A DNA stretch of 63,277 nucleotides, filler included, from Octopus bimaculoides (Eukaryota), in NCBI RefSeq assembly GCF_001194135.2. It is 6 parts of 5 records of this genome, joined end to end, with 100 filler letters (N's around TTAATTAATTAA, not from the genome) between each part and the next. Parts side by side here need not be neighbours in the genome. Positions count along the whole stretch, not along the records: positions 29,008 to 38,010 come from NC_068982.1; 5 more parts are not named here. The stretch is one strand, 5' to 3'. The notes under the pieces are model-generated. The model was not told where the DNA came from, searched no databases, and saw only the letters and a program-made list of their open reading frames with translations. The translations under genes were made by a program, and so were the position numbers. Shown here piece by piece: positions 9,785 to 41,313 of the stretch. How positions within the stretch are numbered: the first letter of the stretch is position 1; each line of letters opens with the position of its first letter.

Positions 9785-10266
9785 TAACCAAAAGAAACTA
9801 TTAACAAAGGCAAAATTCAACATGAACAAAGAGGGGGAAATGTTCACTGTACCCAAGTGTAATGATAACAGATGTGGAACGTGAGACTACATGCATATTA
9901 GTAGATCTATCAGGACAATAAGTGGACAGAATTTCGTAAATGCAAATATGATCTGCAAAAACAGAAATTTTAATCTACTGCATTAAATGCCCAAATTGCA
10001 AGGAACTATATATTGTCGTGACAGGGAAGACATTATCAGAATGCTCAGGAGACCACAGACAACATATCTCGAACACTAATGTTCACGAAATTCCATTGAG
10101 CAAACATACAGAAATATGTGGTCAGAAATTGTTTCTAATTTTTCCTTTCCCCAAACAACATGACACAAGTGAGGCTGGAAGAAAGATAAAAGGAAAATGG
10201 TTTATCAAAATGTTGAAACCTGTTCTGCACGGAAATAACAACAGTAATATAACAACGGAGTGTTAA
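9785..10266 (+). mobile_element. Penelope-like element remnant: GIY-YIG endonuclease C-terminus (frameshifted, with a stop)
   Basis: Hand translation KKLLTKAKF..KCNDNRCGT*DY..NANMICKNR/NLIYCIKCPNCKELYIVVTGKTLSE..HRQHI..IPLSKH..FPF..IKMLKPVLH matches the LIY..C..C...YIG GIY-YIG pattern of PLEs. Confidence 0.8.
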
Positions 10267-16595: not shown

Positions 16596-18136
16596 ATCTA
16601 AGTAAGGATATTCCAGTTGAGAGTATCCGGGCTCACACATTGAGCTCAAAACTTCAAATTAGAAGAATAGTTTATTCTGATCAAAGAAACAATGAAACGA
16701 AAGTTTATTGGAGGTATTCTTTTAATTTCAGAATCTCGAATTCCAAACAAAATTCGAGACAGATTTTTTTTTTTTTTGTGCGCCAACTATTTAAATGTGA
16801 TTTATGTCCACCGTATTCCAACTGACGTTATCATCCTTCCAGCAATTTACTAAACTAAGAAGGAATGTTTTAGCTTTCAGTTACTATTTAATTAATATTC
16901 TTAGTATGGTGTATAATTTTGAATTAATTTTAAATAAGTCCTTGATAATGTGTTTAAAAAAATTCTAATATTGTATACGATATGTCTTTGAAACCCTGTT
17001 TTTTAACATATTTAGCACTTTGCCTGTCCAAAGTATTTCACAGGTTTGTTTCAAATGTTCTGTGCTTTTCTTTCATAAGTCCTAAGTTACTCTGGTGGTT
17101 GAAAAACAAAAAGGAAACATCTATCATATGTGATGCATGGACGCCAGAGAAATATGTCCTCTGTATTTGATGTGATAAACAGAACAGGCAGAAAGTTATA
17201 GTTTATCTGAGATTAACTTGCCTTTTAGATCGATAAAATAAATGCCAGTGCTGTACTGGAAATTATTTAAATCGGGAATTCCTCGATCGGTAAAAATAAA
17301 ATGGCCTTCAGTCGCAAGAAAAAACATCAATGAAGATTTTCTTTACGTTTCCAAGATATGAAGGTAATATAAGAACAAGAAATATGAAGTTCATAATTCC
17401 GCGGTTTTAAAGACTGTAATGTTTGAAAAATGTACAAAATATGAACCATTTCTCTTGAATGAATGTTATCCAAGCTCGCTGGGGAATCAAATAAGATTTA
17501 GTCTTGAAAAGAAATATAAAAATATTGTTTCCTGGATACAGCCTTTAAGGAGTTCCAACCTATAATGGAGCATATATGGTATTTTTGAAGCAAATTAATA
17601 GAGCGTGTTATGGAAGCGAAAGCCAATGCTGTTTTAGTGCCTTTATTAAAAAGACGTACTCTAAATAATTAGTATATTTGGTGGTAGGGAGAATTTTCTT
17701 GTTTTCATCTTTTTCTGTTAGGTAGGAATGTCTGCTAAAAGTGAAAAGGTGTCTAATTTTTAGGCAATGGGAGATTTTCAAAGTGAGTCGTGAGTGAATG
17801 AGCGATAGCATATGTCGACAGAAAACGTCAAAAGCTGTCTGGATGAAGTGTGGTGGGGTGGGGTGTATGAGGTTGATATATATATAAAATTAAGTACTTG
17901 TTTTTGGTCGGAGGGAACATAAAAAGAATCGGAGCCATAAAACTAGGGATATATTTAGGATATTTATGCAGTACAGATAGCATGAAGTTAATTAGGTTTC
18001 TTTTCTTTTTCTTTAAGTTCATGGAGAGAGACATTGACTTGAAATTAGAATTGAGAAACTGAAATGATAACTGAGCGGTTATTAGATATAAGTTGTGTGA
18101 AAGACATTATGCGTATGTATGTGTGTGTGTGTGTGT

Positions 18137-18712: not shown

Positions 18713-19350
18713 TTTATTATTATTATTATCTCTTTATCACAAGTTTTGTTGGAGCTCTTGGAGTCTTGCATGCGCAGCGGGCTTACTACCTGCAGCCTAC
18801 GGTACCATACTATTCTTTCTTTTCATCTATCTAATACTTTCCTGATTATTCTGGCAAACATTTTGTAACAGTTCTACTAGGCACTTTATTCTGATTTCCT
18901 TTATATTCCTCTTGATGTCTTCTGATACTGTTCCCAAAGACCCAACAATAATTAAAATCTATCTTCACCTTCATTTTCCATAGCTGGGCTATTTCGTACA
19001 TAAGAGGGTTGTATCTATCTTTTCACCTTCCTTCTTGACTATTCGTGGGTCAAAGGGACATGCAACGTCAACTATATAGCATATGTGGTGCTCCTTGGCC
19101 ACCACCGCTGGGTCCAGTCTTTTATGCTCAAGCACCTGATCAGTTTGGATTGGGAAATCCCAGAGGATTTGCTAGTCTACGACTCTGCCACTCTCTGCAG
19201 TTTGTGTTCATACCACGTCTTGCCGCTCTCTAGCCCTCACTTTTCGCACAGTTTCCAATGTAGCACTTTTGCTACTCGGTCGTGTCGCCATAACTTGTAG
19301 TGGTTTTGGGCATGTCTAGGGCATTCGTTCGTCATATGGGCAATGGGAAC
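18713..19350 (-). mobile_element. R4/Dong-like non-LTR retrotransposon 3' end (REL endonuclease) with (TAA)n tail
   Basis: AQNHYKLWRHDRVAKVLHWKLCEK*..WYEH..KILWDFPIQTDQVLEHKRLD..IVDVACPFDPRIVKKEGEK; the tail is tttttattattattattat on the plus strand at ~18713-18730. Confidence 0.85.
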
Positions 19351-19419
19351 CAGTGATTTCAATAATAAATACATATGTTTGAAAGAAAAATAATTATTAT
19401 TTTGTTTAACCTAATAGAT

Positions 19420-19550
19420 ACAGTTCGCAATCATAATGTCGTGGGCTCAACTCCTGGACTGGTCAACATGTGTCCTCCAGCAAAGCATTTTATTTTACGC
19501 TGCTTCAGGTTACTCGTCTGACAATGTGTACCAACCGAGTATGATGCAGC
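19420..19550 (+). mobile_element. Decayed tRNA-derived SINE fragment
   Basis: gggctcaactcct...gtgtcctccagcaaagcattttattttacgctgcttcag resembles the copies at 22750 and (reversed) 28517. Confidence 0.45.
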
Positions 19551-21019
19551 TCTCCCCCCCTCTCTCTCTCTCTCTAGCTGTTACATACTGGATGTGCTAC
19601 TGGGTCAGATGCGTGGGGTTTGAGTGAATTTATGTTTGCTCGCGACTACATAGTCAGCCAAAGCAATTCGCGAAAGCATGGTACATTTTTGACCTTGCCA
19701 TTTTGGTTCATGAGAATTGGACTTCTTTTTTTTATTTTCAATTAAACTTCTCATAACTATTAGCTGAAACCGCGACTGTTGATTAATTAATAAAATAACG
19801 AATGTCAATATTGAAAAAGACACAACCTAGTACCGAATCAAGAGAAACACTCTTTCTCAATGCTAATCTTTCTTTAAAATATTTTTTCTGTGCGACGTGC
19901 GTGATATTTATTAGTACCTCATGGGGCAAATGGAGAATCATATCCAAATGTTATTTTGGTTTCGCATCTTCGAAGAAAGCAAAAACGTGTCTGCTTTTAT
20001 CAAATTACAAACTAATTGTAAGTTTTTCCATTTCACAAATGACAGTAGAACTTGACAATGAACAAACGGCAAAAATAATGATGATTATGATGTCATTCCT
20101 CAAATTAATTAATCCTCTATGTACGAGAATCATATTGAATTGTGTTTTAAGATCTCTCTTTAAATTTTTATCTTAAGAATAATTTTGTAGCAAAACTAAA
20201 TATCTAGAAGGAATTCTTCTCCGTATGAGAACTGACCACCTCGTAACTAAATGTGTTTAGATATACAGAATTCATTAACTCATTTGCTGTATGGTGCTTT
20301 AACTTCGTCTTTTTTTTTTTTAAGAAAATATAATTTGTTAAATGTGAAGTGAATCTGCAACTTACTAAGGGATTTGTCGACAAAGAAGAAAATGACACGT
20401 AACAGTTTTATGCCAAATCTTAGAAGGAGGTAGTGAAAGATAAGGAAACAGAGTTATAACTGTCTTCCTTTCTCTAATTAATTGATTACGCTTCAGACAG
20501 AAATTACGATAACCTCAGATTCTCAGGATGACTAAGCTCTTTCTACGGATCGTCGACAACATGTAGCTACTTTCATGCTTCAGTGCCTGGCTACAAACCT
20601 CACATTTAGAGTAGCAAAGAAGCGAGATAAAATGGTAAACTTTTCAAGTTGGCGTCCCATATATTGTTATGAGATATTAAAGGTGTCTCTAGGTGAAATT
20701 GATAGTTTCCTAAATAATTAAAATAAAGNNNNNNNNNNAGTGAATACTGAGGTATTTAGGATATAACACCGATAGAAAACAATAAGCAAATATTGAAAAA
20801 TTTTAAAACCATTTCCTTAACTAAGTGAGCCAACTATAAAGGTCATTCTGTGATTCGGAAATATTTTAAAGAAAAATTAAGACACATTTCAATGGAAATG
20901 GAAATTCAACAATGAGTCTTCAAAGACAGTTACTCCCAAAAATTCTAAAATAAGATTTAGGTTTTATGGAAGATCAAAGTTGGGAACAAAAACAGGACAG
21001 TGGAGACATACAAGGAAAC

Positions 21020-21109
21020 CGAACGAAAACAAACATGGAGCGTGGGGTCCGTGGGAAAGCTCATTTAAATAAAAGGGATCCTTGGTAGTGAAAAGGTTGG
21101 GAACCACTG
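21020..21109. mobile_element. hAT (Charlie-type) MITE end
   Basis: Ends in aaaaggttgggaaccactg, the reverse complement of the cagtggttcccaa terminus seen at 40446 and (variant) 61359. Confidence 0.55.
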
Positions 21110-22681
21110 TACTATATCCTTGTTTTACTACGAACTGTTTGAAAATTTCAGAAGGAAAAAGATCATGCTTTTTAATAATTTCAAAAACGCCGTCAAAAAC
21201 AATTGCCTATTTCCCAGTCTCTCAGATCCTTCTAAGGTAAGACTAATACGAGAATTAGATGGAAAATTTCTTTTACATCATAAGGAGCTGATGATTTCAG
21301 TTTCTTCGCAACAATCATTACTTTTTTTTGTTATGAGGAGTCATGTGGGTAACAACTGAATTTCGACTGCATTATAAATGTACCTGGATCAAATCATATT
21401 AACACATACGTATACACATTCATACGTAGATATATGTTCAACTCCCTCCACCTTTCCCTCTCTATTTTTCTCGCTTTCTTTTTCCCAAAATATTTTCAAT
21501 CTCCTACCTTTTAGAAATAATGGCTTCTAAAATTTAGGTAGGAGGCCAGCAATGTCGGAAAGATGGGGCGAATCGATACCAATTACCCCAATATTTTACT
21601 AGTACTGTATTATATCGACCCAGGAGGGATAAATGGCAAAGTTGACTTTGACGAGCTTTTTTTTTTCACGTTTGAATGTACACGAACGTGTTAAATAAAA
21701 TTGTATATCTTTATATTTCAATCAAGGCCACTTCGTGTGCCTCTAGTTAATTAATTAGTTAATTAATTGCAGCTTGGTAAAGTTTTAAGTACATCAGTAA
21801 ATTTACTATTTGCTCTTTAAAAGGTTTGGGAGAAGATTTGACTGCTGTATCTTGCATTTCGAACGGCTACATAAAATCTGTTGCTTGATCGCTTCACAAC
21901 CATTGCTCAACACACATTACAGTGATTCAATCGCCATGAAGTCTGAATACAATATGGAGAATCGAATAACATTTCAGATTTTGCTGGTGTCAGTAAATCC
22001 AGTTGTTGCTTCAGACTAAAGTTTGTTGACGGACAGGAGTTAATTAATGGTCAAACCCTTACAAATTTCCTCGGATTTGGATTTTTTTTTTTCCCGTGTA
22101 AAATATTTAGCTTCGCGTAAAACTGTGTGCCTAAACCTCGTCCCAATAGCGAACTATAAAGACTTTCTGTTGACTCTGAACTGGCATATTTAAGGTCAGT
22201 ATTGTCTCGCTGCTAACATTAAGTAGCGTAGCCAGGGGTAAACTTGAAAATGACATGATGGACATGGATGGAATGCCTTTTAATACAGATCAGCTGAATC
22301 AGGACTAACTTGGGACTAAACAACAACAAAAAGATCCTTAACAATGTCCTTGAAACTGACAAAAGAATCGATAATGAATACATATTAACAATTTGGTTTA
22401 AATTCATAATCGATATTATTACTTGCTCATATATATTCTTAATTACTGATTTCTAATTACACATCTGTAATTACACACACTCAATTACATATCCTTAATT
22501 ACAGCGTCTTAATTACACGTTCCTAATTCCAAAGCCTACACCGGATAATCAGACAACTGCAATCAGGAATTCTGTATTTGATTTCGCGATTTTCTAAAGA
22601 ATGGCAACTTGGATTGTCATCTAGTCATTCATTTCTAGTTTGGAATAGGGCGTCATATGCTGTATTTTCTCCTTATATGCA

Positions 22682-22717
<36 letters not shown>

Positions 22718-22749
22718 CGTGTGTGTGCGCGCGTGCGTGCGCGTGAAAG

Positions 22750-22910
22750 TGCGGGGCTCAGTGATAAGAGTGTTGCACTCACGATCGCAAGATCGTGGTC
22801 TCGATTCCTAGTCTGGCGATGCGTGGTGCTCTTCATTTCACGTTGCTCCAGTCCACTGAGCTATAAATGTGTAATCCTGCGACGGACTGGCATCCCATTC
22901 ATGAGACGTT
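22750..22910 (+). mobile_element. tRNA-derived SINE
   Basis: A-box/B-box-like head (ctcagtgataag..gtctcgattcc) followed by tttcacgttgctccagtccact, shared with 28517-28816. Confidence 0.65.
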
Positions 22911-23649
22911 GGTCCGCCCACCGACATAGTGGGGTAGCATCATTCCATAGCTTCAATAATGCGTGAAAGTGCATTCTCAGCAGTGGTGTATTACCACTTC
23001 CAAAAGTCTAGTTGTACAATGATGTATATATATATATATATATATTAGTTAAATTAATTTCAATCGTGTTTTGTTTTGGAAAAAATTTATAAGGTTTGAA
23101 CTTTCATTATAGTAGTATCTATGGAAGACCGGTGGGATTATTATTTATATGGACTTAAAGATGGATCGCAATTTAGCATATAATATAGTTATTGCAGTTT
23201 ACTATTTATACCGATACAATGTAGACTGGTTTAAATATCTCTTGTAGTTTTAGTAAAGTTAGTGTTTAATTCTACCTATATATTGATTGATTGAAATAAT
23301 GTGGTTATTAAGCTTTACTTTTATATTACACCACGAAAGACGGTAGAGATTATAATTTTTTCTGATTTAATAGAGTTGTAGCTGTTTAGTTACGTATTTA
23401 GAAGTGGGTGCAATTTACTTATGGAATTTATTTATCGATACGGTTGAATATTGGGTAAATGTGTTTGAAAGTTGTGGTTTCTTTAGTATGTTTGTTCCCA
23501 AACAACACTTATTTTAGTGCTGTTGACACCGCTGGATTGAATGGTACAGCCCAGGTGTCGAAACCATAATGATATCTGTGGGGCAGCTGATGATGGAGGT
23601 ATGTTGGATTGTTGGTATGGCTGTGGAATAGTATCATAACACATCCTTT

Positions 23650-23694
<45 letters not shown>

Positions 23695-25759
23695 CATGTG
23701 TGTGTGTATGTGTGTGGTGGTGTAGTCGAGATCAAGAAGCATCTTCACCTGTGTTTCTGAAATACGGTGGAAACTGATCGGGAGACGGTAACCGTACCTT
23801 TTTCTTTTCTTTTAACGCTGTGCTGTGACCATCTTGGTGTAGTCGTTGATTTTTTTATTGGTGCTTTATCCTGTATAGATTTAAACGGTTTCATTAATGT
23901 ATACTTTCTTTATTGCGATCTAATAAACATCGAAATTATTAACTTTTTAAATCTTTTCTTCGATTTTCGCGTTGATGATGAATAATAATGAGAATGCCGT
24001 TAAGTTTCCTTTGGAAAAGGATAAGCCAAGTAAAACGAAGTAATGTCAGATGAATGCCTTAAAAGTCATTGATCTGATATTGAACAGCAACGCCTTTACA
24101 AAATTTAGCCTCTTTTTCTAAACCAGTGTTATTAATTCAATTTTGAAGAACGAAAGTGTTGAATAAAAATTTGTGATGCGTTTCTTCATCCCCAAGTAAT
24201 TTTGACAATTACAAAAACAACAAAAAAGTGTTTTCAATTTGTACGTGTCGATTCTTAAGGTCCGCCTCATAATTAATTTAATTATACCGTGTAATTAATT
24301 ATTTGTATTTAAATCCGTATAAAAGAATCCCTCATCAAATTTATTTCATACAGCATTCAGTCGTAATTAGGAGAAGGGTTCTGCTGGTCTCTAATTAAGA
24401 CATAATTTGTTTCATGTAAATAGTGATATCATGACTAGTGCCATGAAAGGAAGTGAAAAACGGAAGTGTTTTTAATACTGGTGTAAATATTTGAAGTATG
24501 TAAGTATTTCATTCATTATGGATGACAGCTATCAATATTCATCGGATGAGCTTTTTATCTTATTCACTGTTTTAATAACATTGTGCTAAGTTTGATGTAG
24601 CCTACCACCTACATGTTTTGTAGCCCTAAGTGTCAACGACTAACACAGTGAAACGTAAAGACATTTACAGCTGCTTCTTTTGAACGTCCTATGAATCCAC
24701 AGTGGAGACCAATCGTAAGAAGCTCCATTTAAATAACATTAATGATTGTAATATTTTTGTTATTAAAAAAATCGAGATCGACTGCTCTGTAAATTGTAGA
24801 ACCTTTAGCGCCAGATTTCAATTGTTCGGCAACAACAGAAAAGCAAAAAAAAATTCACACCACTTATCTTTTGATATCTTCAAACAAATTAAAAGAAACA
24901 CACCAAATTACATGAAAAAAGCAGCAGAAAAGAAAAATGAAATTATAAATCCTTTTATCAGCTATATGGCATACTGTTCAAAGATGCAGAACAAGTATTA
25001 TAATCTTTGGCAAGAAATAAATTATGAGTGATGTTAATTTTTTTTTCTTCTTGTTTCGCGAGAAAGAATTCAGTGATGTGTTGCAATTGTTAACTAAGCA
25101 GCTAAATTGTAAATTAATGAAAGAAGAACCTAGAGACTTCATTTGTTAAATATTGAAGTTGATTTTTAAAATTTGGCAAATTATCAAGTGCATGCTAACC
25201 ATTATATTATATAGTTATTTTTCATTGAATACATCAAGTTTACACGGTTTTTGCAATAGTAATTTCTGGTCATGTTCTTTGTTTACAAATAAATTTGTTT
25301 CAAGTTTACATTTTAATTTTTTTTTTTTAGTTTTCCTATAATTACAAAAATACAAATAGTAATGACTTGTTTAATTAACCTTTGTACTTTAATAATCATT
25401 AAGTCATTAATTATTGTCAAATTTATGCGAACAGGGAGTATCTTCTGCAAATATTTGAAAGAAGGGGAATAAAGTAAAAGGGTAAGAACTACTGCTCTAC
25501 TCGGTCGTCGCTCAGTCTACTAAAATTAACAGCTAAACGCCCATCATCCACTAGTCACACGTAGCTGTTTCACAAAAGAAAAAAAAAGCACACTGTACAA
25601 TACATTAGTAGACAAACTGTGTCTAAAATAGGTTTTACGAAAGTTTTACTCGCTACGACCTGGCTTTGGGTTAAACAACAAAGGCAACAACAGGATAGAG
25701 AAATATATTGATTCTTAATATAAGTATAGCGTCACGAATTCTTGGATAGGGTAACACTC

Positions 25760-25895
25760 AACTCTATCACATCGTGGGCACCTATTTAATCGAGTAAGAA
25801 TGCTAAAATACAAAATCGACCTCGAGTAGATTCGAACACAGAAAACACATCGTCGTTCTGCAGGACATTTTACGCCACGCTCTACTAATTCTGCC
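25760..25895 (-). mobile_element. Decayed SINE of the ggcggcgagctggcagaa family
   Basis: The reverse complement begins ggtgcgttggcagaattagtagagcg and contains gaatctactcgaggtcgattttg. Confidence 0.5.
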
Positions 25896-26094
25896 AACGC
25901 ACCAGCCCCAAATCTGGAAATCTATTGTCATTTATCACGTGCCGATATTGTACATGTATATTTGGAATTTATTGTTGTACAACAAGCAAGATAAAATATT
26001 ACAAATCTCTACGTCATATTTTATCAAAAAACATTACACAACTATGCATACATACATACAAACATATACATATATATATATATATATTATATAC

Positions 26095-26166
<72 letters not shown>

Positions 26167-26343
26167 NNNNNNNNNNTAGGTTGGTAGGTAGGTAGGTAGG
26201 TAGGTAGGTTAGTAGGTTGGTAGGTAGGTAGGCAGGTAGGTAGGTAGGTAGGTAGGGAGGGAGGTAAGTAGGTATAGACAAAAAGCAAGTAAAATATCAC
26301 AATCCTCTACGATGTCATATTTTGTCAATAAACATTACAGAAC

Positions 26344-26374
<31 letters not shown>

Positions 26375-26526
26375 GGTTCTATATATGTATGTAATAATAT
26401 ATATGTGTGTTTGTGTGTGTGTGTGTGCATATGTGTANNNNNNNNNNNNNNNNNNNNNNNNNNNNNNNNNNNNNNNNNNNNNNNNNNNNNNNNNNNNNNN
26501 NNNNNNNNNNNNNNNNNNNNNNNNNN

Positions 26527-26578
<52 letters not shown>

Positions 26579-27441
26579 ACTGATTATCTCGTTTGGTTGC
26601 GTTTGCATCACAATTGGAGTTAGTGGAAAATCAATCACCAGAAAAGGTACATTAGAAACGTAAATGTATTATCTGATGGTCTCAGAGGACTGAGAATGTT
26701 ATGAGAATGTATTGCAGGTAATACATATATGACAGTTTTAGCTGACTAGCGATAATAATTTATAATGGCTGCACTAGATATGAGAGCTTGATACTTATAT
26801 TGTCTCCACACTAAGAATGTAAGCAAAAGAATCGCTGATTACAAATTATAATGCGTTATATACTGTTTTTATTTATACAGTATTATATATAAGCTACATC
26901 TTTTCTTTTTTTTTTTTTTTTGATCTTGATGTTTGGAGTGAAATTTCATTCAAACAAAAACATATGCAATTTCTTGTTTTCTGTTATTTTTTTCTTGCCA
27001 AAGTTAATAGGTTCCCCCGTTGTGTGCTGTTTTTGTTCAGCCCCATTTCAACACTAATTGAGGAGAACATTAATCAAGATTATTCCAGCTGTGACCATGC
27101 CGTCTTTTTGTGTNNNNNNNNNNNNNNNNNNNNNNNNNNNNNNNNNNNNNNNNNNNNNNNNNNNNNNNNNNNNNNNNNNNNNNNNNNNNNNNNNNNNNNN
27201 NNNNNNNNNNNNNNNNNNNNNNNNNNNNNNNNNNNATATACATATGTTATACACACACATATATATATTTATATGTACGTGAATATCTGCAAGTATATAC
27301 ATGCATCTGTGGCTTGTTATTACTAAGTCTTTATATATACATGTGGATGTTTCTGCAGAATTCTGTGCATACATTTAAATATGTGTATATGTAGGGATGT
27401 GTGTGCGTGTATGTGTGTGTGAAAGGGGTAGAGAGAGAGAG

Positions 27442-27487
<46 letters not shown>

Positions 27488-27899
27488 AGGTATAAAATTA
27501 AACAGCATCTAGTGGTGTTCGGGAGTTCTGGAATTTTGGAGAGCATGGAGTGCTCCTTAATTACCATTACTGCCAGACCCGTTCTGACCTGAAACGATAG
27601 TACTTATCAAGAACACATCCATGACTTAAATAGATTTCCCAGGGTTAGCGGCGTTTCCTGTCATAATTGACAAACCCATGAATGGGTCAGATCTTCTAGG
27701 AGAAAGATACTCCGGCATAAAACCTCCACTCAAAATAGTGGTAGTCATTATGCAATGCTTGTTACTGCAACATCAATAGTGGCCGAGAGAGCGGCAAAAG
27801 TGTCGTACAGCCTTTTGTCACTTAAATCCAATGACGTATGATGACTCACTATCATGTTTGTGGGACAGCTAGCATCTGACAAGATGAAGCAATCATCAT

Positions 27900-27971
<72 letters not shown>

Positions 27972-28516
27972 GTTTCTTTATTAGCCACACAGGGCCGAAC
28001 ACAGAGAGGACAAAATGCAATGTAGAACTTTTCTTTTCGAAAATAGAAAAAAAAAAGGAGAAAAATAAAATTCCTATCAAAGAGGATCGTGTATCACAGA
28101 AAATATTAAAAATGTAAAAAACAAGATTAGGTTTATCTGTGGAAAGAAAAGCCTACGGAAAAGACCACGGTAACCTCAGGCAGGGAGGGAATAAACACAT
28201 GAGAGCAAAGTGCTCTCTCTCTCTCTCCCTTTTCGATTTACAGGATCATGTGCAAAATGGTTTCGCCACTCGCACATACCAGTTTTGCTTTATTCACCCA
28301 ACTTTTATTGAAACTTTCACGAGACAAAACTTGCTTCTCTATTCTCACCTTCCTTTTTAAGTGGTATTTGAAAAAGTTGATGAGCGACTGGCCAGAGAGG
28401 AAAGTGTTTGTATCTAAACCTTTCGCTCGAGTTCACCACACACATTCTTTCACCATGGGCACCAGTACGATGAACACTGCCTTGCCTTGCCTATATATAT
28501 ATAGGAGTAATCCGTC

Positions 28517-28816: not shown

Positions 28817-29133
28817 ATACATACATACATATAAATATGTAAATTATGAATGTATGTGCATATGTATATGTACGTGTGTGTATCTGTGGGCACTTATACC
28901 TGTGCGTNNNNNNNNNNNNNNNNNNNNNNNNNNNNNNNNNNNNNNNNNNNNTTAATTAATTAANNNNNNNNNNNNNNNNNNNNNNNNNNNNNNNNNNNNN
29001 NNNNNNNTCTTCTTCTTCTTCTTCTTCTTCTTCTTCTTCTTCTTCTTCTTCTTCTTCTTCTGCTTCTTCTTCTTCCATTCCTTCATTATCATCATCACAA
29101 TTAAATTGATCACTAATGCGTTTATCGTTCCAG

Positions 29134-29258
29134 CTGCTGTAGGAATCACGACCATTGCTACGAACGCGTCAATCGAGTTCAGTGTAATTCCCTCACACAT
29201 ACAAAAGTTTATTTCGCTTCATATCATTGGTATAAACATCAAGGATTAATCTATTGTT
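29134..29258 (+). CDS. Secreted phospholipase A2, catalytic exon
   Basis: Branch-like cactaat at 29111, acceptor tttatcgttccAG at 29132-33 and donor GTAAGT at 29259. Translates as CCRNHDHCYERVNRVQCNSLTHTKVYFASYHWYKHQGLIYC, containing the CCxxHDxCY His-Asp motif of sPLA2. Confidence 0.9.
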
Positions 29259-29407
29259 GTAAGTATATGCATTATCATCAAAATATTAAACGTACACACA
29301 GGTTGAGTAAAAAGTTTTTTCGTATTTTAAGCTTTAATTAATAGTTTAAACAGATTGAATGCGAAAAGTGTTTATTCATCAACATGAACTGAATTGGTTC
29401 TCTATCG

Positions 29408-29688
29408 ATTACAACAACGAGGGTTCCAGTTGATCCGATCAACGGAACAGCCTCCCCATGAAATTAACGTGTAAGTGGTTGAGCACTCCACAGACACGGG
29501 TATCTTTAACATAATTCACAAGGAGATTCGGCACGATACAGAATGTGACAAGGCTGGCTCCTTTGAAATACTGGTACAGCTCAATTGTTGACAGTTGAGT
29601 GGACTGGAGCAACGTGAAATAAAGGGTTTTGCTCAAGGACACAACGTGCGGACGGGAATCGAATTCATGACCTTACTCTAACCACCAC
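29408..29688 (-). mobile_element. tRNA-derived SINE (same family as 28517-28816)
   Basis: Shares ggttccagttgatccgatcaacggaacagc...gagcactccacagacacg...ctggagcaacgtgaaat...aaggacacaacg. Confidence 0.8.
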
Positions 29689-29749
29689 GTGTTTTCACAT
29701 TCATCAACATATGATTTATTTTCTGTTACATAATTTATTTTCTTTTGTG

Positions 29750-30380
29750 CCAGGAGCTCAATTCAATGCTTTAAGCATTTGGTTGGTTTGGAGGCAAAAC
29801 ACACCCTACTCTCGTTTTTAACTTCATCCACACTGTCAAACCTCAGTCTGTGCAGGAAATGAGCCATGATTCCAAAAGTGATAACCTGGCGGTGCAAAGT
29901 CTGGACCGTAGGCAGAGTGAGGCAGCCCTTCCATCCCCTTAAGTTTGCACTTGGTCATATTGGCAGTGTGTGTCGGGGTACAGTGTCATGCTGTAGGAGT
30001 GCGTGTCATTGAGAGCTTATGGAAGTGTTGATTGATGGTGCTTTGTGAAGGACCAAGTTCTGCCGGCAATGTACGAGTGCTTGTGCTTGGCTGTTATTCA
30101 ACTATTTCAAGTAAGGCTTCATCTCTCACACCAGCAGTTCTCCCTGACCAAGAAAGGCGAGTTCAGCCTCCAAGGCTGGTGTCATCTTCCTTGAAACATT
30201 TGAACTAATTTTGTACAACACATTCGTTGGCAATACCTTGGCCTTTGGACGCAGCCCTTGTACTAGGTAATTTTTTCCACAGGCGGTGTAAAATGGCTTT
30301 AATTGCAATTTTTCACCACTCATTATCAAAGCTACAAAATAAGGAATAGGCAATTCAGCATGAGTGGATAACAAGTTATA
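29750..30380 (-). mobile_element. Mariner transposase remnant (catalytic C-terminal half)
   Basis: LLQHD, LPHSAYGPDFAP (the LPHPxYSPDLAP motif) and MAHFLHRLRFDSVDEVKNE across frameshifts. Confidence 0.75.
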
Positions 30381-30589
30381 TTTAATTGATATAACATGGC
30401 AGCATAATTTGCCAAAAGTGATCAGTTAAAATTCGAAAAAAGCTTTCATCTCAACCTGGTATACATACATGTGTGTATGTATGTATGTATGTATGTATGT
30501 ATGTATCTATGTATGTATGTATGTGTATGTGCGTGTATGTGTGTGTGTGTGTGTGCACGTGTGCATGTGCGTGTCTTTAAGCTTCTATC

Positions 30590-30780
30590 TAAACCGCTTG
30601 ACAATTGGTGTTGCTTTGTTTAAGTCACAGTAGTTTAACAGTTTAGCCAAAGAATCCGATAGAATGTGTATAAGATTTAAAAAGGATTAGTACAGGGGTA
30701 GATATACTCGATACAGGGCGGTGTTGCAGCATAAGCCTCAGTCCAATGATTGAAACAAAAGAAACAATAAATACAAAAGA
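30590..30780 (+). mobile_element. 3' half of an abundant SINE (gcttgacaac...ccgatagaata...aaggcggtg family)
   Basis: Same ordered motifs as 56000-56180 and 54600-54800. Confidence 0.6.
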
Positions 30781-30789
30781 AACTGGAAT

Positions 30790-31430
30790 TTTGCAATATT
30801 ATTTCATTCACTTTTTTTTACAGTTTACACTTTTATTTGAAGCAATACTTCGGTCCAGACGCGTTTTCCACTGTTCGAAGCAGTGCTGGTGCTCTTGCGA
30901 AGTGATGCCTTTTAAGTCCGCCGACGTTTTTTCTTTCCATCTGCAAATTCCGTAGCACCAGCTTTCGTCACCAGTGATGACCTCCGAAAAAAGGTTCAGA
31001 TCAACTTCCAGCTGTTCTTTCAGTTCGCGACACGCATTCGGTCGTGACTGCTTTTGATCTTCTGTGAGCAAACGAGGCACAAATTTTGCAGCAACTTTTT
31101 TCATTCGCAGTTCCTCGCTCAAAATTCATTGGCAGGAGCTCTAGGACACACCAGTCATATCAACAAGTTCGTCAATTGTTCGATGACTGTTCTCCAAGAT
31201 CAGTTCATGAATTTTCGTGATGTTTTCATTCATTCGGGAGGTCGACAGTCGTCCTGAAGGAGATTGGTCTTCAAGCGGTAAATTATCATTCCTAAATTTG
31301 TGTTTTGCTCATGGCTGCGTCCTTGTAAGCTGTTCAGCTCATGACAGCTGTTTTGGCCGCCGTTTTCTCCCGCAGAAAACAGAATTTCACGGAAGCACGC
31401 TGTTCCTTCGTTTCAGCCATCGCAAAAATT
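30790..31430 (-). mobile_element. Internally deleted mariner element
   Basis: ATG at 31420: MAETKEQRASVKFCFL..TAYKDAAMSKTQ..; SEELRMKKVAAKFVPRLLTEDQK..VITGDESWCYG is joined directly to the C-terminal LKGITS..CFEQWKTRLDRSIASN. A (TA)n run flanks it at 31436. Confidence 0.9.
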
Positions 31431-31432
31431 GA

Positions 31433-31475
<43 letters not shown>

Positions 31476-31841
31476 GTGCACTGTTGTACTTTGGGTGAGT
31501 CATACTGCCAATAAAATCACATGCACTGGTTATGTTTCACTTAAGTTTTATTACCTGTCACTTAGATAATTAATTAATTAATTAATCGATAAGTTTGTGA
31601 AAGTCCTTTCGTTACAGACTTTGATCTTATCACAAGACTTCTGAGATGATCAATAATTATTCATTAAGCTGCTGAGGTGAAAGAGATGACAAGGTCACAA
31701 TCTGTGACAAAAGGACTTTGACACTAATCGTTCAACTGATGAACTGGTCAAATATTTAATTGATTGGTAATAAAACTAATCTGAAATACAACCAGTGAGT
31801 GTGTGTTTTTTAATTATTAGTATGACCCGCACCTCCCGTAT

Positions 31842-32040
31842 GGCGGCGAGCTGGCAGAATCGTTAGCATGCCGGGCAAAATGCTTAGCGGCATTTCGTCC
31901 GTCTTTACGAGGTCAACTTTGCCTTTTTTTCCTTTCGGGGTCGATAAATTAAGTGCCAGTGAAACACTAGGTCGATGTAATCGACTTACCCACTATCCAC
32001 AAAATTTCAGGCCTTGTGCCTTAAGTAGAAAGGATTATTA
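31842..32040 (+). mobile_element. SINE (ggcggcgagctggcagaa family; Meta-domain-like core)
   Basis: tRNA-like head plus ggtcaactttgcctttt..cctttcggggtcgataaattaagtgccag core; several copies in the window. Confidence 0.85.
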
Positions 32041-32163
32041 GTTTGACCCTCATAATATACAACAATATCAGCTTCAAAACATTTTCTCATGAAGAGTATT
32101 TTAAAACAAATACAGATATGAAGTTTAATCATTTGTGTTTTCTTTTTCTTCTCTCTTTTCTAG

Positions 32164-32306
32164 TGAATAGTGATGAATGTCAGCAGGCTACGTGTATGTG
32201 TGATAAAAAAGCATCAATCTGCTTCTATAATCATCTCATTGAGTACAATGAATCGAACCAATTGCCATTCAGTAAATTAATAGGTGGTCTTTTCAACCAT
32301 CGCTGA
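32164..32306 (+). CDS. Secreted phospholipase A2, terminal exon
   Basis: Long polypyrimidine tract plus AG at 32162-63. The phase-1 join with 29258 (t+tg = Leu) gives NSDECQQATCMCDKKASICFYNHLIEYNESNQLPFSKLIGGLFNHR*; CxxxxCxCDxxAxxCF carries the second catalytic Asp. Confidence 0.88.
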
Positions 32307-32380
32307 AAATTTATTTTGCTTCAGCCAACTCTGGGCACTATTTTTTCATCAACTGTTTCTGCAATTCACAGTAAATCGCC

Positions 32381-32386
32381 AATAAA
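32381..32386 (+). terminator. Polyadenylation signal AATAAA of the PLA2 gene
   Basis: AATAAA lies 75 nt after the stop codon and is followed by a genomic A22 run at 32406-32427. Confidence 0.6.
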
Positions 32387-33639
32387 ACAAGAAAATGAGA
32401 CTAAGAAAAAAAAAAAAAAAAAAAAAAGAACAGTCATCATTGCAACATTTCCTCATGTTGTTGATGTTGTTGATGTTGTTGATGTTTTCTGCCAGATCAA
32501 CCGTCTTAGAACACTTATGATCTAAGGCAATCTCGCAGTGACCATCCGGTCGTTTGTTTTTCAGACAAGGTGTAGCTAGAGCTACTTTATCTAATGCGCC
32601 CTTCCTTTGATTTGAGAGAAATTTGACTGCTATTTCTAAAAGACTGAGCGACCACGTCTTCATTGAACAGTCTTGTACTTGTTGGCATGAGAATTGTTAG
32701 CGCATCGGAGAAAATGGCTCTTTGTGCTCTGAGTTCAAATACCTTTGAATTGATAAAATAATGTACCAGAGAAGTACTAGAGTTGAGGTAATGAACTTGA
32801 CCCCCTCCTTCAAAAATGCTAGTCTAGTACCAAAATTAAAAGCAATTATGAAATTAGATTTGTGCAGTACATCTATTCTCGCTTATCACTGATTCATTCA
32901 AAACTGATCTGGGATAACACGGTACACTAAACTGTGAACCACGTTGCGCTAATCACGGATTAATCCGTGATAAATGATCAGTTAACGATTTTACTTGAAC
33001 AACAAAAGTGCGCCCCGGCAACTATCCACAATGCTCAGCTACCCAGAATGAATTGTTTACAATCTATACTTACATCACCATGCTGGGGAACTGGGTATTT
33101 TTTTAATACGGATTTACGTACACGTAGCCATCGACATGCGATTAATGAGCAGAAAAAGTATTTTTCGTTGTTATATTCTTATTGTTTACTGACCATATAT
33201 TATTAAATTTTCCTCTATATACTAATCCAACTATGAAACAATCTCATGTGTATTTAAAATCTGTTCGGGGGTGTCATTTGGTTAAGTTAGTAGTGGGACA
33301 GCTTGCGGTCTCGGAATGAAACCTATTTTTCTAATGCGTTTGATCCATTTATGAACGATTCATTTAACACTGTCTTTTTTAAACCAGACTCGCGTGATAA
33401 ACAAGGGTAAGCGTATATTACAGTGTAGGGAACACAACAGTATCATTTGAAGATAGTGGACAAACATTTGAAATATCGTCAGTTTGTATCTAACCAGGCT
33501 GTGATTATGAGCAAGAAACATAACTCATGAATGACTAACTTTTGTTTGTACGTTGTTGCTGTTTATCCCCAGGTCAGCTCTGATCGGTTACTGTTATTTC
33601 ACTTGTAACCTTCTTATCTGAGACTACATCGTCCACTAT

Positions 33640-34080
33640 ATCCGTCACTCACAAAGCATTGGTCGGTCCGAGACTATAGTACAGTGCTGGTCAACCTGAG
33701 GCCCGGTGCAGCATGCGGCCTGAAGACTTTTATCGATACTTTCTTGAAATGGGTTTATTTAAACAAACATTTAAAAATATTTAGCAAAAAATTCAAGATT
33801 GTAATGAAATTAAAAAAGAAAGATACTACTGTTTTTGCAACAATATTTCATGTTGAATCAACGATCATCCATTCATTATTTGCATGAGAAAGCAAAATGC
33901 TTTCAATTCTGTAAGTATACAAGCGGCCCTCAAAAAACTTTCTGTGATTAAAGTGGCCTGCACTATAATTCGAGTTGGCCAGTCCTGCTATAGTAGAAAA
34001 CATTTACCCAAAGTGCACGCATTGGGACTGAACCCGAAACTTGTTGGTTGAAAATGAGCTTCTTAACCACACAGCTATAC
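33640..34080 (-). mobile_element. SINE 5' half (CORE-like) split by a hAT MITE
   Basis: The reverse complement reads gctgtgtggttaagaagctc..ttcagtccca..ctttgggtaaatgttttctactatag|..|tctcggaccgaccaatgctttgtgagtg, colinear with the copy at 55780-55900. Confidence 0.8.
33682..33987. mobile_element. hAT-type MITE (306 bp) with perfect 8-bp TSD CTATAGTA
   Basis: TIRs CAGTGCTGGTCAAC / CAGGACTGGCCAAC (11 of 14 match); TSD at 33674-33681 and 33988-33995. Confidence 0.9.
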
Positions 34081-34168
34081 TTCTAGATCCTATAGCTTCG
34101 GAATTTTTCTTATAATGTGCCCAACATCCTTAATAAAAATTATTATTATAATTATTATCATTGAGCAA

Positions 34169-34558
34169 GGCGGTGAGCTGGCAGAATCGTTAGCACGCTG
34201 GACAAAATGAGTTCAAATTCTGCCGAGGTCAATTTTGCCTTCCATCCTTCCTGTGTCGATAAATTAAGTACCAGTGAAATACTGGGATCGATGTAACCGA
34301 CTAATCCCCTCTCCCCGGTCTTTAATAGAAAGGATTATTATAATTATTAAGGCAGCAAGCTGGCAGAATTGTTAGCACGCCGGGCAAAATACTTAGCGGT
34401 ATTTCGCTCGTTGCCACTTTCTGGGTTCAAATTCCGCCGAGGTCGACTTTGCCTTTCATCCTTTCGGGGTCAGTAAAATAAGTACCAGTGAAACACTAGG
34501 GTCGATGTAATCAACTAGCCTCCTCTCCCAAAATTTCAGGCCTTGTGTCTTTAAAAGA
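34169..34558 (+). mobile_element. Two adjacent SINE copies (ggcgg/ggcag...gagctggcagaa family)
   Basis: Heads at 34169 and 34351, both with the gccgaggtc..tttgcctt..atcctt..gtcgataaatt core. Confidence 0.85.
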
Positions 34559-34559
34559 A

Positions 34560-34960
34560 AGGAGTGAAAGAGCAGCGCATGCCATCAAAATGAAACTGGT
34601 TTACAAATATACGAAGCCCGACTACCCGTCTGATAAGGGTAAACCGGGCTCATGCATCACAACCATATATGTGCGACATGGTGATCTCATATCAAGACAA
34701 ACAGCGCATGACCTTGCAGTTGGGGCCCAGTTAGAATTTTCTTCAGGTTGAGTAGCTCATCCCACTCAAAAGGTCCTTGAATAAGGGTTGTTTAAGAATG
34801 TTGAACAAAACACCCATGTTTCCAGGGTGGTATTATTCAAACCCCAAAAATTCCTCTCAAACATTGCTATGATGTTCCCCCACTACTTCTGCTCGTAATC
34901 AGTGATGCTCATATCGTCAGCCACTAAGAGACATGCTCAACTAGTTATGGTCAAACAACT
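34560..34960. mobile_element. Interspersed repeat (second copy at 37100-37640), probably a LINE 3'UTR or LINE-derived SINE on the minus strand
   Basis: gagagcagcgcatgccatcaaa..catgcatcacaaccatat..ctcaaaaggtcc..gtcagccactaag.gacatgctcaact is present in both places. Confidence 0.65.
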
Positions 34961-34965
34961 GAAAT

Positions 34966-35000
34966 TTCTTCTTCTTCTTCTTCTTCTTCTTCTTCTTCTT

Positions 35001-35031
<31 letters not shown>

Positions 35032-36570
35032 GTTATTTATGTTACATCTCTTCTTCATTCCGCTGCTTAAGGATGTAATTTTTCTCTCAGCACGTGTTGT
35101 TCCAAGTACTGCTGCCAATTGTGTACTTCCTATGAAGTTTGGTATTTGCAGCTTTTGATACCGCACTCACTTTTACATGCCACATTCACTTTTGTGGTTC
35201 TATGGATGCATTTCATTTCCAATGCTAGGTCTTGGTACTTCCCGACTTTTTCGTCTTCAGAATATTCCGATCTGTTGGTAAAGCTATATCGTTGTAGATC
35301 CATTATTTGGACTCTTTCTGTAGGAAAGTGATATCTGCTCGATTATGTTGCAGCTTTTTATCTGTGCATATTGGCATATCCCATGTGACTTTCACCGGAT
35401 CATTCTCTGCTACAGACAAAATTTATTACTTATATCACCTGTTGGATCATTGTAGCCAATACTTCAAACACAACAGCTAGTATATTCGTTCAGTCACTTT
35501 GTCACGGTGTTTTTTTAACTCCCTTTGCACCAGTTTTGAGTATCCACTAATTATATATGTAACTGCCTCAGAAGTTTTCTGACATAATTTACACCAAGGT
35601 GATACTACTGTCATATCAATGCTACACTCGATTGAGTTTTCTTGTAAATCTTGTTCTTGAGTAACAAGAATCGTTCTTTCTCTTTCCCTTAAAAAAAAAA
35701 AACCATGTCATTTCTATCTCCGGATTCTTCATCAGCTTCATCCGTTCTTTGCCGGAAAAAAATCCCTCCCAGAGTCGGACCTTCTCTTTCCATTTGATGA
35801 TCTTTTATTTATTAGTCTCATTTTGAACTTCAGGAGAGTCACACTATTGTCTGTGATCACCTTCTCATTCAGTGCAAAGGGCAACATTCTTTCATCACTA
35901 TACTTCAGATAGGTATGCAAAAGCTTGATCTCCTTCATAAAACTATCCTTTATTACCACCAATCCTCTTCCAACCTCTTTCTTGGGTAAGTAAACCTCGC
36001 TTCGTTACTTCTAGTATGAAGGCACCCATGCATAACCATTCTCTTCCTATTTTTTCTCTCCCTATTGACCAGTTCTTCCTTTGTACATTCCACAATTCCA
36101 ACCGCTGATGTCTCTACCCAGGTTTCCTCCATTCAGCTTGGATCCACATAACTTTTTTACTACTCTGGTATATTCAGAAGAAATTTTTTCCTTCATCTTG
36201 ATGTTCATCATCTGACCTTATCGTAAAACACCAAGATACTTATCTAGACCGAATGCAATCTGGATGTCATGAGAGAAAATTCATACAGTCTCAATAAGGG
36301 AGTCTAGTTGACCTCTGCTAGCTCCGTAAAGCTTCAAATCGCCCATAAACAGCAATTGGTTAATTGGTCTCATGTTTTTCTGCAGTTTGTAACCAAATCT
36401 CAACTTCTATACTATTATTAAACAGCAAGGGTGACACAGGGTCTCTTCGAAAGATTGCCCCCTTGATGTCGATTTGTCCAGCTTCCCCTCCACCTGCTGT
36501 CAAAACTGTCTTCCAGTTCCTCATACTGTTTTGAATAAATATATTCCATTTTTAGTTGCCCCGACCATCT
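34966..36570 (-). mobile_element. 5'-truncated, decayed R4/Dong-like LINE (RT through REL) with (GAA)n tail
   Basis: PINQLLFMGDLKLY at ~36325-36366 (decayed F/YMDD), YLPKKEVGRGL, HRDKV, VKVTWDMPICTDKKLQHNRADI; (TTC)n at 34966-35030. Confidence 0.85.
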
Positions 36571-36614
36571 CCAGGTATTTCAGAAACTACGAGTGAAGAA
36601 TCATATCATATGCC

Positions 36615-37050
36615 CTTATTATTATTATTTTCATTATTATCTTCTGTTTCCATTTCTTGCCAAGTGTCTTCCTGATACCCAGGGCAGAGAAACACACTGT
36701 ATATATTGGCAGGCCATTAAAATAAATACTCCAGATTGTTCATTTACAAAGTCATGTGATAGAGAAAAAGGGGAAGAAAGGAGAGAGAAAAAGGGAAAAA
36801 TAAAAAGTAAACAAGTAAACAAAGATAATTAAGGGGAAAGGGAAAGAAAATTCAGGGCGACAATACTCTTCTCAGTACGTGTGGTGTACCATTTAAGACA
36901 ATCTTTTGCACTTCCTGCATGGATGGTAAACCAGAGATCATTCTTAAATCACTTTCAGTTCCTTTTTTGATCGTTCCAAGTGCTCCTACATTCACTGATA
37001 TTGTAACCGTCTTGAGAAACCACATCTTTTCGATTTCGATTAAAAATCTT
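36615..37050 (-). mobile_element. R4/Dong-like LINE 3' end with (TAA)n tail
   Basis: IEIEKMWFLKTVTISVNVGALGTIKKG..QEVQKIVLNGTPHVLRRVLSP*; tail at ~36617-36640. Confidence 0.8.
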
Positions 37051-37099
37051 TATATTTTCTGAGTTTATTATTATTATTATAATTATTATTATTATTATT

Positions 37100-37640
37100 A
37101 GTGAGTGAGAGAGCAGCACATGCTATCAAAGTGATGCTAGAGTATAAATCTACGAAACTCAATATACACATCATGACTACCCATCTGATATGGGTACACC
37201 AGGCACATGCATCACAACCATATGTGCGTGACATAGAAATCTCATAAGGAAATAAGCAAGTGGGGTGGAGGTGTTTCAGTCAGAATTTTTTTCAGGTCGA
37301 ATTGCTCATCCGTCTCAAAAGGTCCATGAATAAGAGTTATTTAAAAATGCTGAATGAAACAGCTATGTCATCAGAGGGGAATTATTCAAATCCCAAAGAA
37401 TTCCTCTCAGCGCATGGCTATGATGTACTCTCGCTACTTCTGCTTGTAACCAAAAATGTACATAATGTCAGCCACTAAGGGACATGCTCAACTGGTTAAG
37501 TTCAAACAGCTGACAAGTAAATCTGCGGTACTGAGCAAAATATTTGTTGCAGCCCATCTTTTACGCTAAGACAAAACATGTACATGTTAGTTAATACTTC
37601 CAATCAGTTAAGATCAGAAGCTGTGAGAGACTCTGCCTGA
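37100..37640. mobile_element. Interspersed repeat, same family as 34560-34960, abutting a (TTA)n run
   Basis: Colinear similarity with 34560-34960; (TTA)n at ~37066-37100. Confidence 0.65.
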
Positions 37641-37653
37641 TACATCTAAGCTT

Positions 37654-38010
37654 TTATTATTATTATTTTATGTTTGACTTTTGTTTTGCATTTGTACAAG
37701 TTGGATCCAAGTCTCACCCAGAGACCTCAAGAGACAACAAGTTAGAAGTTCATGTAGGTGTTATGCCTAGGGTACCATATATTTGGATTTGTACAGTTTT
37801 GTTCAAGTGAATGTTTAAGAAACCATAAGAAAATAATGTGTTTGCTTTAAAATTTGCGATCACATAGACAGTATTTTACGTAGGATATGGGCAGTTCCAA
37901 CGAGCACTATCTTTTGAACTTCAGCCATTTTGGGGTTTCCTGGAATCTGATCTAGGTAGTAACCAGCCCGTTTTGCTGTCATTCCCAGGGCACCTATGAC
38001 AATAGGTATT
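37654..38010 (-). mobile_element. R4/Dong-like LINE 3' end with (TAA)n tail
   Basis: IPIVIGALGMTAKRAGYYLDQIPGNPKMAEVQKIVLVGTAHILRKILSM*. Confidence 0.85.
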
Positions 38011-41090: not shown

Positions 41091-41313
41091 GTGAGCATTT
41101 ATTTCTTTATTCAGTGAATTCTGAAAAATCAGCTGCTGGTTCTGTTATGTAATATAAATTGTATAATATGCATGACTAAACCGTCTTTTATCATAAATTT
41201 TGAAAGAGGTGATATGAAATTACTTGATCAATCTCAAGTTGTTGAAACAATTGTATACCATGGAATAAACTTATACCATAAACGCTACTCTTCGCTTATT
41301 CTGATACACGTGC

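Follow-up and report, generated by a model that had tools for sequence, protein, structure and literature searches.

We wondered whether the transposon-rich DNA of Octopus bimaculoides analyzed here holds a working gene for a secreted phospholipase A2 (sPLA2) and, if so, whether this gene could encode a venom enzyme. The window, meaning the whole stretch of 63,277 nucleotides (nt) in six joined parts, includes a piece at positions 29008-38010 that is bounded on both sides by runs of N. Within this piece an initial annotation had recognized two exons encoding the catalytic part of an sPLA2, and it had proposed a hidden gene, possibly of a toxin family. The parts of the gene that lie in the window are these:

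29134..29258, plus strand: coding exon 3 of 4, the catalytic exon (exon A of the initial annotation), from the sequence and RNA contigs of 12 runs
29259..32163, plus strand: intron 3-4a, 2905 nt, filled with repeats and skipped in X9 and X2 RNA contigs
32164..32306, plus strand: coding part of terminal exon 4a (exon B of the initial annotation), from the sequence, X9 and X2 contigs and the P0010 C-terminus
32307..32427, plus strand: 3' untranslated region (UTR) of exon 4a, from RNA contigs

At these positions the two exons have the AG/GT borders and the in-frame join that had been described for them. Exon 3 follows the acceptor ttccAG/CTGCTGT (AG at 29132-29133) and ends at the donor TTGTT/GTAAGT (GTAAGT from 29259). 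Its first base is the third base of a split codon, and it encodes (N)CCRNHDHCYERVNRVQCNSLTHTKVYFASYHWYKHQGLIYC, including His48, Asp49 and Tyr52, which is identical to residues 66-106 of both P0010 (XP_014780854.1, isoform X2) and P0009 (XP_014780847.1, isoform X1). Exon 4a, which defines isoform X2, is preceded by a 24-nt polypyrimidine tract and the acceptor AG/TGAATAG; it encodes (L)NSDECQQATCMCDKKASICFYNHLIEYNESNQLPFSKLIGGLFNHR with Asp99 and four cysteines and ends with the stop codon TGA at 32304-32306. The codon split by the exon 3/4a junction, T/TG, encodes Leu, and the joined product comprises 88 amino acids (aa), CCRNHDHCYERVNRVQCNSLTHTKVYFASYHWYKHQGLIYCLNSDECQQATCMCDKKASICFYNHLIEYNESNQLPFSKLIGGLFNHR, beginning CCRNHDHCYERVNRVQC and ending IYCLNSDECQQATCMCDKKASICFYNHLIEYNESNQLPFSKLIGGLFNHR before the stop. 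Searching Pfam, as had been proposed, returned the profile PF00068 (Phospholip_A2_1) with 44.3 bits, above the gathering cutoff of 32.1 (E 2.8e-11; the match spans profile positions 42-108 of 110). In the PDB the peptide best matches human group IIE sPLA2 (E 5.7e-8), and the motifs CCxxHDxCY and CxCDxxAxxCF line up. Judged by these matches, the PLA2 resemblance of the joined peptide is far above chance, and the alignments agree with the annotation that His48, Asp49, Tyr52 and Asp99 are intact. The frame of exon 3 has no start codon and the catalytic exon is therefore missing from a mechanical list of open reading frames (ORFs), an absence that had also been noticed correctly.

RNA runs (X2, X9, X18 and others) were compared as coded samples and not as named tissues. 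Contigs of 12 runs cover exon 3 (29134-29258) base-exactly and without mismatch, with zero depth in the flanks. A transcript joining 29258 to 32164, whose absence would have refuted the proposal according to the initial annotation, was seen in two samples. In X9, a 929-nt contig with a depth of 410 carries exon 3 at contig positions 539-663 and exon 4a at 664-927 and spans the 29258>32164 junction from either side: the loose end that follows 29258 is TGAATAGTGATGAATGTCAGCAGG, the start of exon 4a, and the one that precedes 32164 is ...GGATTAATCTATTGTT, the end of exon 3. An X2 contig also begins at 32164 and is preceded by the last bases of exon 3. The 3' UTR contains AATAAA at 32381-32386, and the mRNA contig ends 20 nt beyond this signal inside a genomic A-run (32406-32427). 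As the contigs end within this run (the 929-nt X9 contig at 32427, a 284-nt X2 contig at 32423), the cleavage site is placed only to ~32400-32427. At its other end the X9 mRNA contig carries 538 nt upstream of exon 3. Directly upstream of this exon every contig reads TTCCGGTGATCCTGTAGATAGCATTGATAA (L001 17700), which encodes SGDPVDSIDN, the conserved segment between the Ca2+ loop and the CC pair; with these 10 codons added from the RNA, the match to PF00068 amounts to 61.3 bits (E 1.5e-16).

The initial annotation had found no Ca2+-loop or signal-peptide exon in the piece and had pointed to a missing phase-2 upstream exon and to the assembly gap just upstream. Both statements were right, as became clear from the fetched O. 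bimaculoides locus (L001; GCA_001194135.2, CM046602.1:78915534-78966821), in which the piece corresponds to positions 19003-28005 with 100% identity. Exons 1 and 2 lie beyond the gap upstream of the piece, and a further last exon lies downstream of it:

L001 10001-10049: exon 1, start codon and signal-peptide segment MFQHLLVLFLGCFLCT, ~9 kb upstream of exon 3
L001 17585-17729: exon 2, short propeptide ending in KR, N-terminal helix SLDSFGEMI and Ca2+ loop YGKWCGFGGSG
L001 41146-41288: exon 4b, alternative last exon (isoform X1), 19 kb downstream of exon 4a and outside the window

The hydrophobic segment MFQHLLVLFLGCFLCT of exon 1 is followed by VSDGLVKR and then by the helix SLDSFGEMI, the signal peptide being judged by eye. 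The end of exon 2 and the assembly gap are 15 nt apart; in assembly coordinates exon 2 lies ~1.4 kb upstream of exon 3, and its Ca2+-loop motif YGKWCGFGG (L001 17674) aligns to YGCYCGIGG of human group IIE sPLA2 (PDB 5wzo). When the four segments 10001-10049, 17585-17729, 19129-19253 and 22159-22301 of L001 are spliced, the intact ORF gives P0010 exactly; with the last segment swapped for 41146-41288, the translation is exactly P0009.

These data make it very probable that the window exons are coding exons 3 and 4a of a four-exon, ~31-kb O. bimaculoides gene for a 153-aa sPLA2 precursor. The joined 88-aa peptide is identical to the last 88 residues of XP_014780854.1 (UniProt A0A0L8IC38_OCTBM; isoform X2, 153 aa), no mismatch was seen between the piece and the RefSeq gene model, and the database entry and the window exons represent the same gene without differences. 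An exhaustive HMMER search with exon 3 alone found P0001, a 155-aa PLA2 of Octopus vulgaris and Octopus sinensis (93% identity), whose 90% cluster contains four O. bimaculoides RefSeq products; a word-indexed protein search with a sparse index returned no match for the 88-aa peptide. The proposed secreted-type PLA2 gene with an intact catalytic center held up on Pfam, PDB and RefSeq identity. The claim that it is hidden fell, as its product is in RefSeq (XP_014780854.1) and UniProt (A0A0L8IC38) and GCA_001194135.2 carries an annotation of the gene. Gene, product and isoforms are already known as automatically annotated, uncharacterized entries. The RefSeq name, acidic phospholipase A2 Cc1-PLA2 isoform X2, is an automatic best-hit label with no characterized function behind it. 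As things stand the locus has little significance, since the family is among the best understood of enzymes. The useful negative result is that the gene is no unannotated toxin gene.

Could the two exons instead be a relic, the orphaned 3' part of a PLA2 gene left in transposon-rich DNA without working upstream exons? The piece itself gives this impression, being bounded by gaps, rich in repeats and devoid of a Ca2+-loop or signal-peptide exon. However, 538 nt precede exon 3 in the mRNA contigs, the same assembly contains exons 1 and 2 right beyond the gap and yields an intact spliced ORF, and the same gene structure is kept in O. vulgaris, for which a gap-free locus (L002) was available. Nei-Gojobori counts between O. 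bimaculoides and O. vulgaris yielded a ratio of non-synonymous to synonymous rates (dN/dS) of 0.09 for exon 3, which points to strong purifying selection on this exon between the two species; the value for exon 4b is 0.76. In exon 4a, 6.5 non-synonymous and 0.5 synonymous differences were counted, numbers far too small for a test and no more than a hint. The mRNA contigs, the upstream exons and the conservation in O. vulgaris rule out a pseudogene or relic, an explanation to which we give next to no probability. The ORF of the four-exon gene is intact, conserved, spliced and expressed, and it has all catalytic and Ca2+-binding motifs of the family.

How closely does the predicted enzyme follow known sPLA2s? 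Full-length P0010 matches PF00068 with 100.2 bits (E 1.3e-28, profile positions 3-108 of 110), and the mature protein matches human group IIE sPLA2 (PDB 5wzo) with E 6.8e-22, with the Ca2+ loop and the active site aligned. CCRNHDHCY (exon 3) and CMCD (exon 4a), the catalytic motifs, match their counterparts in the human protein, to which identity is only ~35-40% by eye. With the vertebrate group I, II, V and X sPLA2s the octopus protein has in common the Pfam family, the N-terminal helix, the XCGXGG loop, CCxxHDxCY, Tyr52, CxCD(99) and five core disulfides, although its mature form has 10 cysteines and theirs have 12-16. The disulfide partners 29-45, 44-105, 51-98, 61-91 and 84-96 are all present, so that the 10 cysteines make five bridges. 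Three bridges of other sPLA2s are absent. The Cys27-Cys126 disulfide is missing from both isoforms and from other Octopus species, with Lys27 in YGKWCG and Ile126 in SKLIGG (KLC in group II). The group I pair Cys11-Cys77 is missing too, as neither the N-terminal helix nor the segment separating Cys61 from Cys84 has a cysteine; the group II pair of Cys50 with the C-terminus is likewise absent, since position 50 is His (HDHCY) and no cysteine follows Cys105 in either last exon. The loss of Cys27-Cys126 is a variant of the fold, and membership in the Pfam family stands. An AlphaFold model built on a 6-row alignment reached a predicted local distance difference test (pLDDT) score of 39 and was discarded.

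From these features we propose how the enzyme might work. Removal of the signal peptide, probably followed by cleavage after Lys-Arg, would give a 129-aa mature protein of ~14.8 kDa with 10 cysteines, which by its family should be an extracellular, Ca2+-dependent enzyme. With Ca2+ bound by Asp49 and the loop carbonyls, a water molecule activated by His48, with the support of Asp99 and Tyr52, would hydrolyze the sn-2 ester of glycerophospholipids at lipid interfaces. Through its alternative last exons the gene would produce two enzymes with a common catalytic core and different C-terminal surfaces (29 of 47 residues shared). In other sPLA2s, interfacial and target binding involves the third helix after Asp99 as well as the C-terminal tail. 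By analogy, the choice of last exon, which would alter this helix and the tail, may plausibly tune the preference for substrates or targets.

Several points weigh against reading the locus as a gene for a working secreted enzyme. With the canonical Cys27-Cys126 bridge missing, stability and activity of the product are assumed. Enzymatic or proteomic evidence for the product of this gene was not found, and the signal peptide is a by-eye judgement. Contig depth on exon 3, which measures expression poorly, reaches 410 in X9 and 2.5-41 in eleven other runs, and there were no reads on exon 3 in three deep raw-read RNA runs (X41-43), which indicates restricted expression.

A second question concerned the two 3' ends of the gene. 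Exon 4b belongs to a tandemly duplicated segment at least 2 kb long (window 31486-33586 versus L001 40665-42981, 78-84% identity). Exons 4a and 4b are identical at 115 of 143 nt and 29 of 47 aa and have the same acceptor tract and an AATAAA each, while the peptide of exon 4b is slightly more basic (pI 7.9 versus 6.0). Exon 3 is joined to 4a in X9 (depth 410) and X2 and to 4b in 6 of the 12 runs (X18, X26, X29, X32, X35 and X36, depth 14-41); in the remaining runs the contig stops at the branch point. The last exons 4a and 4b are used mutually exclusively, and exon choice differs between samples. The exon order at the O. vulgaris locus, E1-E2-E3-4a-4b, matches that of O. bimaculoides; in O. sinensis, isoforms of either last-exon kind occur (P0005, P0007). 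Exons 1-3 and the gene layout are alike in isoform X1, which uses exon 4b, and in the O. sinensis and O. vulgaris orthologues (P0001, P0005, P0007). As the pair of last exons occurs in all three species, the duplication predates their divergence.

Logan contigs are derived from a de Bruijn graph and could in principle join paralogues across identical stretches, and the 125 nt of exon 3 are identical in both forms. The two 3' forms might accordingly stem from separate paralogous genes with an identical exon 3, or from chimeric contigs, with no alternative splicing involved. We consider this very improbable, because both loci hold exons 1-3 in single copy ahead of 4a and then 4b, all within 24-31 kb, because the 10 kb flanking them on each side have no additional PLA2 motif and because RefSeq models the forms as isoforms of one gene in O. 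bimaculoides as well as in O. sinensis. A search for a second PLA2 gene or tandem copy likewise found none in the piece or, for two species, in the 10 kb to its left and right.

Alternative terminal exons of one gene are thus the preferred reading, and a conserved Octopus pair of such exons with sample-dependent use is mildly new and of possible interest to specialists. The further step, that one sPLA2 gene makes two enzymes through anciently duplicated last exons whose choice is tissue-specific, is an idea to which we assign a rather low probability. If it is true and the tissue with high expression turns out to be a salivary or digestive secretory gland, exon 4a would represent a gland-specialized module, which the non-synonymous excess in exon 4a (6.5 versus 0.5) would fit. 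Toxin or digestive diversification would then have proceeded by exon duplication and alternative splicing and not by gene duplication.

Some variation at the two ends of the transcript was observed in addition. Exon 2 has tandem acceptors 6 nt apart at L001 17585 and 17591 (ttacAG/TTTCAG/ATGG), which account for isoforms whose signal peptide ends with or without Val-Ser (P0009 versus P0011). Beyond the poly(A) site of exon 4a, mismatch-free RNA contigs of lower depth extend over window positions 32410-33600 (X9 22.7, X2 12.5, X18 4.9), and X18 covers this region without containing exon 4a; this RNA may stem from read-through, from an extended 3' UTR or from pre-mRNA of the isoform with exon 4b. 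Words of exon 3 were also present in run X27, labelled as a termite gut metatranscriptome, at the same share as in octopus RNA runs, which is most likely cross-sample contamination.

Is the gene a venom gene of the posterior salivary gland (PSG)? The initial annotation had pointed out that sPLA2s are reported from cephalopod posterior salivary glands, which is correct (PMC7693380; bioRxiv 10.64898/2026.04.09.716377) and speaks for the idea. So do the sample-restricted expression (depth 410 in X9, 2.5-41 in eleven runs and zero reads in three) and the 6.5 non-synonymous against 0.5 synonymous changes in exon 4a, tiny as these counts are. However, X9, the high-depth run, is a coded sample, and the importance of sPLA2 for octopod venom is not demonstrated according to PMC7693380. 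Moreover, the sole sPLA2 in the O. vulgaris PSG proteome (proteinGroup 434) has its best nr match in a different O. bimaculoides gene, XP_014780833.1 / OCBIM_22024452mg, with 73.7% identity (PMC7693380 supplement). This documented cephalopod 'venom' sPLA2 and the gene in the window belong to the same family and genus, but the best match of the former is a separate O. bimaculoides gene. The products of the window gene are 81-92% identical to its O. vulgaris orthologue (P0001, P0005). Judged by the published best match and not by a comparison of the sequences, the window gene does not appear to be orthologous to the O. vulgaris PSG sPLA2. Since that protein shares 73.7% with XP_014780833.1 and the orthologue 81-92% with the window gene, the documented salivary enzyme is most likely a paralogue. 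A profile search for XP_014780833.1 did not return this paralogue, and the literature gave nothing on the accession numbers and nothing useful on PLA2 expression in the O. bimaculoides PSG. The venom reading of the window gene is unsupported, and we regard a role as PSG sPLA2 as unlikely; the enzyme may serve digestion, immunity or another function. Specialists may find it of interest that the window gene is apparently not the PLA2 gene of octopus saliva itself but a paralogue of it.

The nearest relative found outside the cephalopods is a 'Scol/Pla-like' protein of the nemertean Lineus longissimus (XP_064645166.1, P0004), with 45% identity by BLASTP and 40% over the alignment. Its Ca2+ loop (YGGWCG) likewise has no Cys27, as is the case for the moth Leguminivora (P0016, YGNYCG); nematode relatives retain this cysteine. 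The loss of Cys27-Cys126, as in nemertean and insect relatives, may be of interest to cephalopod and venom specialists. P0004 differs from the octopus protein in bearing a ~120-aa acidic C-terminal extension, and the Lineus isoforms vary in the catalytic-exon segment whereas the octopus isoforms vary in the last exon. P0004 and a second Lineus protein, P0012, differ only in the catalytic-exon segment (CCMHHDHCYEHIRK... versus CCMKHDHCYYKLHR...), so that exon duplication with mutually exclusive splicing is found in this animal as well, though in a different exon.

The intron between exons 3 and 4a contains three further features:

30824..30840, plus strand: start of the alternative terminal exon of isoform X4, adding FYTFI and a stop, from the match to the P0006 C-terminus
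30808..31430, minus strand: degenerate mariner-type transposase remnant with stops and frameshifts, from six-frame reading and a PDB match
31839..32040, no strand assigned: SINE-like (short interspersed element) repeat just upstream of exon 4a, from RNA contigs and direct-repeat families D3, D4 and D6

Isoform X4 (P0006) uses an acceptor, tttttttacAG (AG at 30822-30823), that lies within the mariner remnant, and its product is devoid of Asp99 and the four cysteines. No contig supporting the X4 junction was found in four RNA runs; going by sequence, X4 would be a putative transposon-derived terminal exon that yields a truncated protein. The remnant itself matches the Mos1 mariner transposase (PDB 4u7b, E 8.2e-5) and in Pfam gives a sub-threshold HTH_24 match only. 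A second fragment at ~29830-30330 on the minus strand shows, by eye, a transposase-like C-terminal motif, LPHSAYGPDFAPPGYHFW.

At the SINE-like repeat (31839-32040), imperfect RNA contigs number in the hundreds, with summed depths in the thousands, and further copies lie at 34166-34315 and 34348-34529. Scans of the piece for tRNAs and Rfam families were empty, including at this repeat. The intron also holds microsatellites and a 320-nt hairpin-forming inverted repeat with arms at 31510-31589 and 31732-31811 (minimum free energy -95.4 kcal/mol, z -7.3). An intronic X9 RNA contig has G at three positions where the genome has A (31772, 31773 and 31794), all in one arm of the hairpin. These sites resemble A-to-I editing of a hairpin in pre-mRNA that is like a miniature inverted-repeat transposable element, and could be such editing or, alternatively, polymorphism or another copy of the repeat. 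In the rest of the piece, scraps of a reverse-transcriptase-like ORF (LLFMGDLKLYG) with no Pfam match lie at ~35950-36550 on the minus strand, and a dispersed repeat pair (34545-34962 versus 37100-37513) shows ~81% identity.

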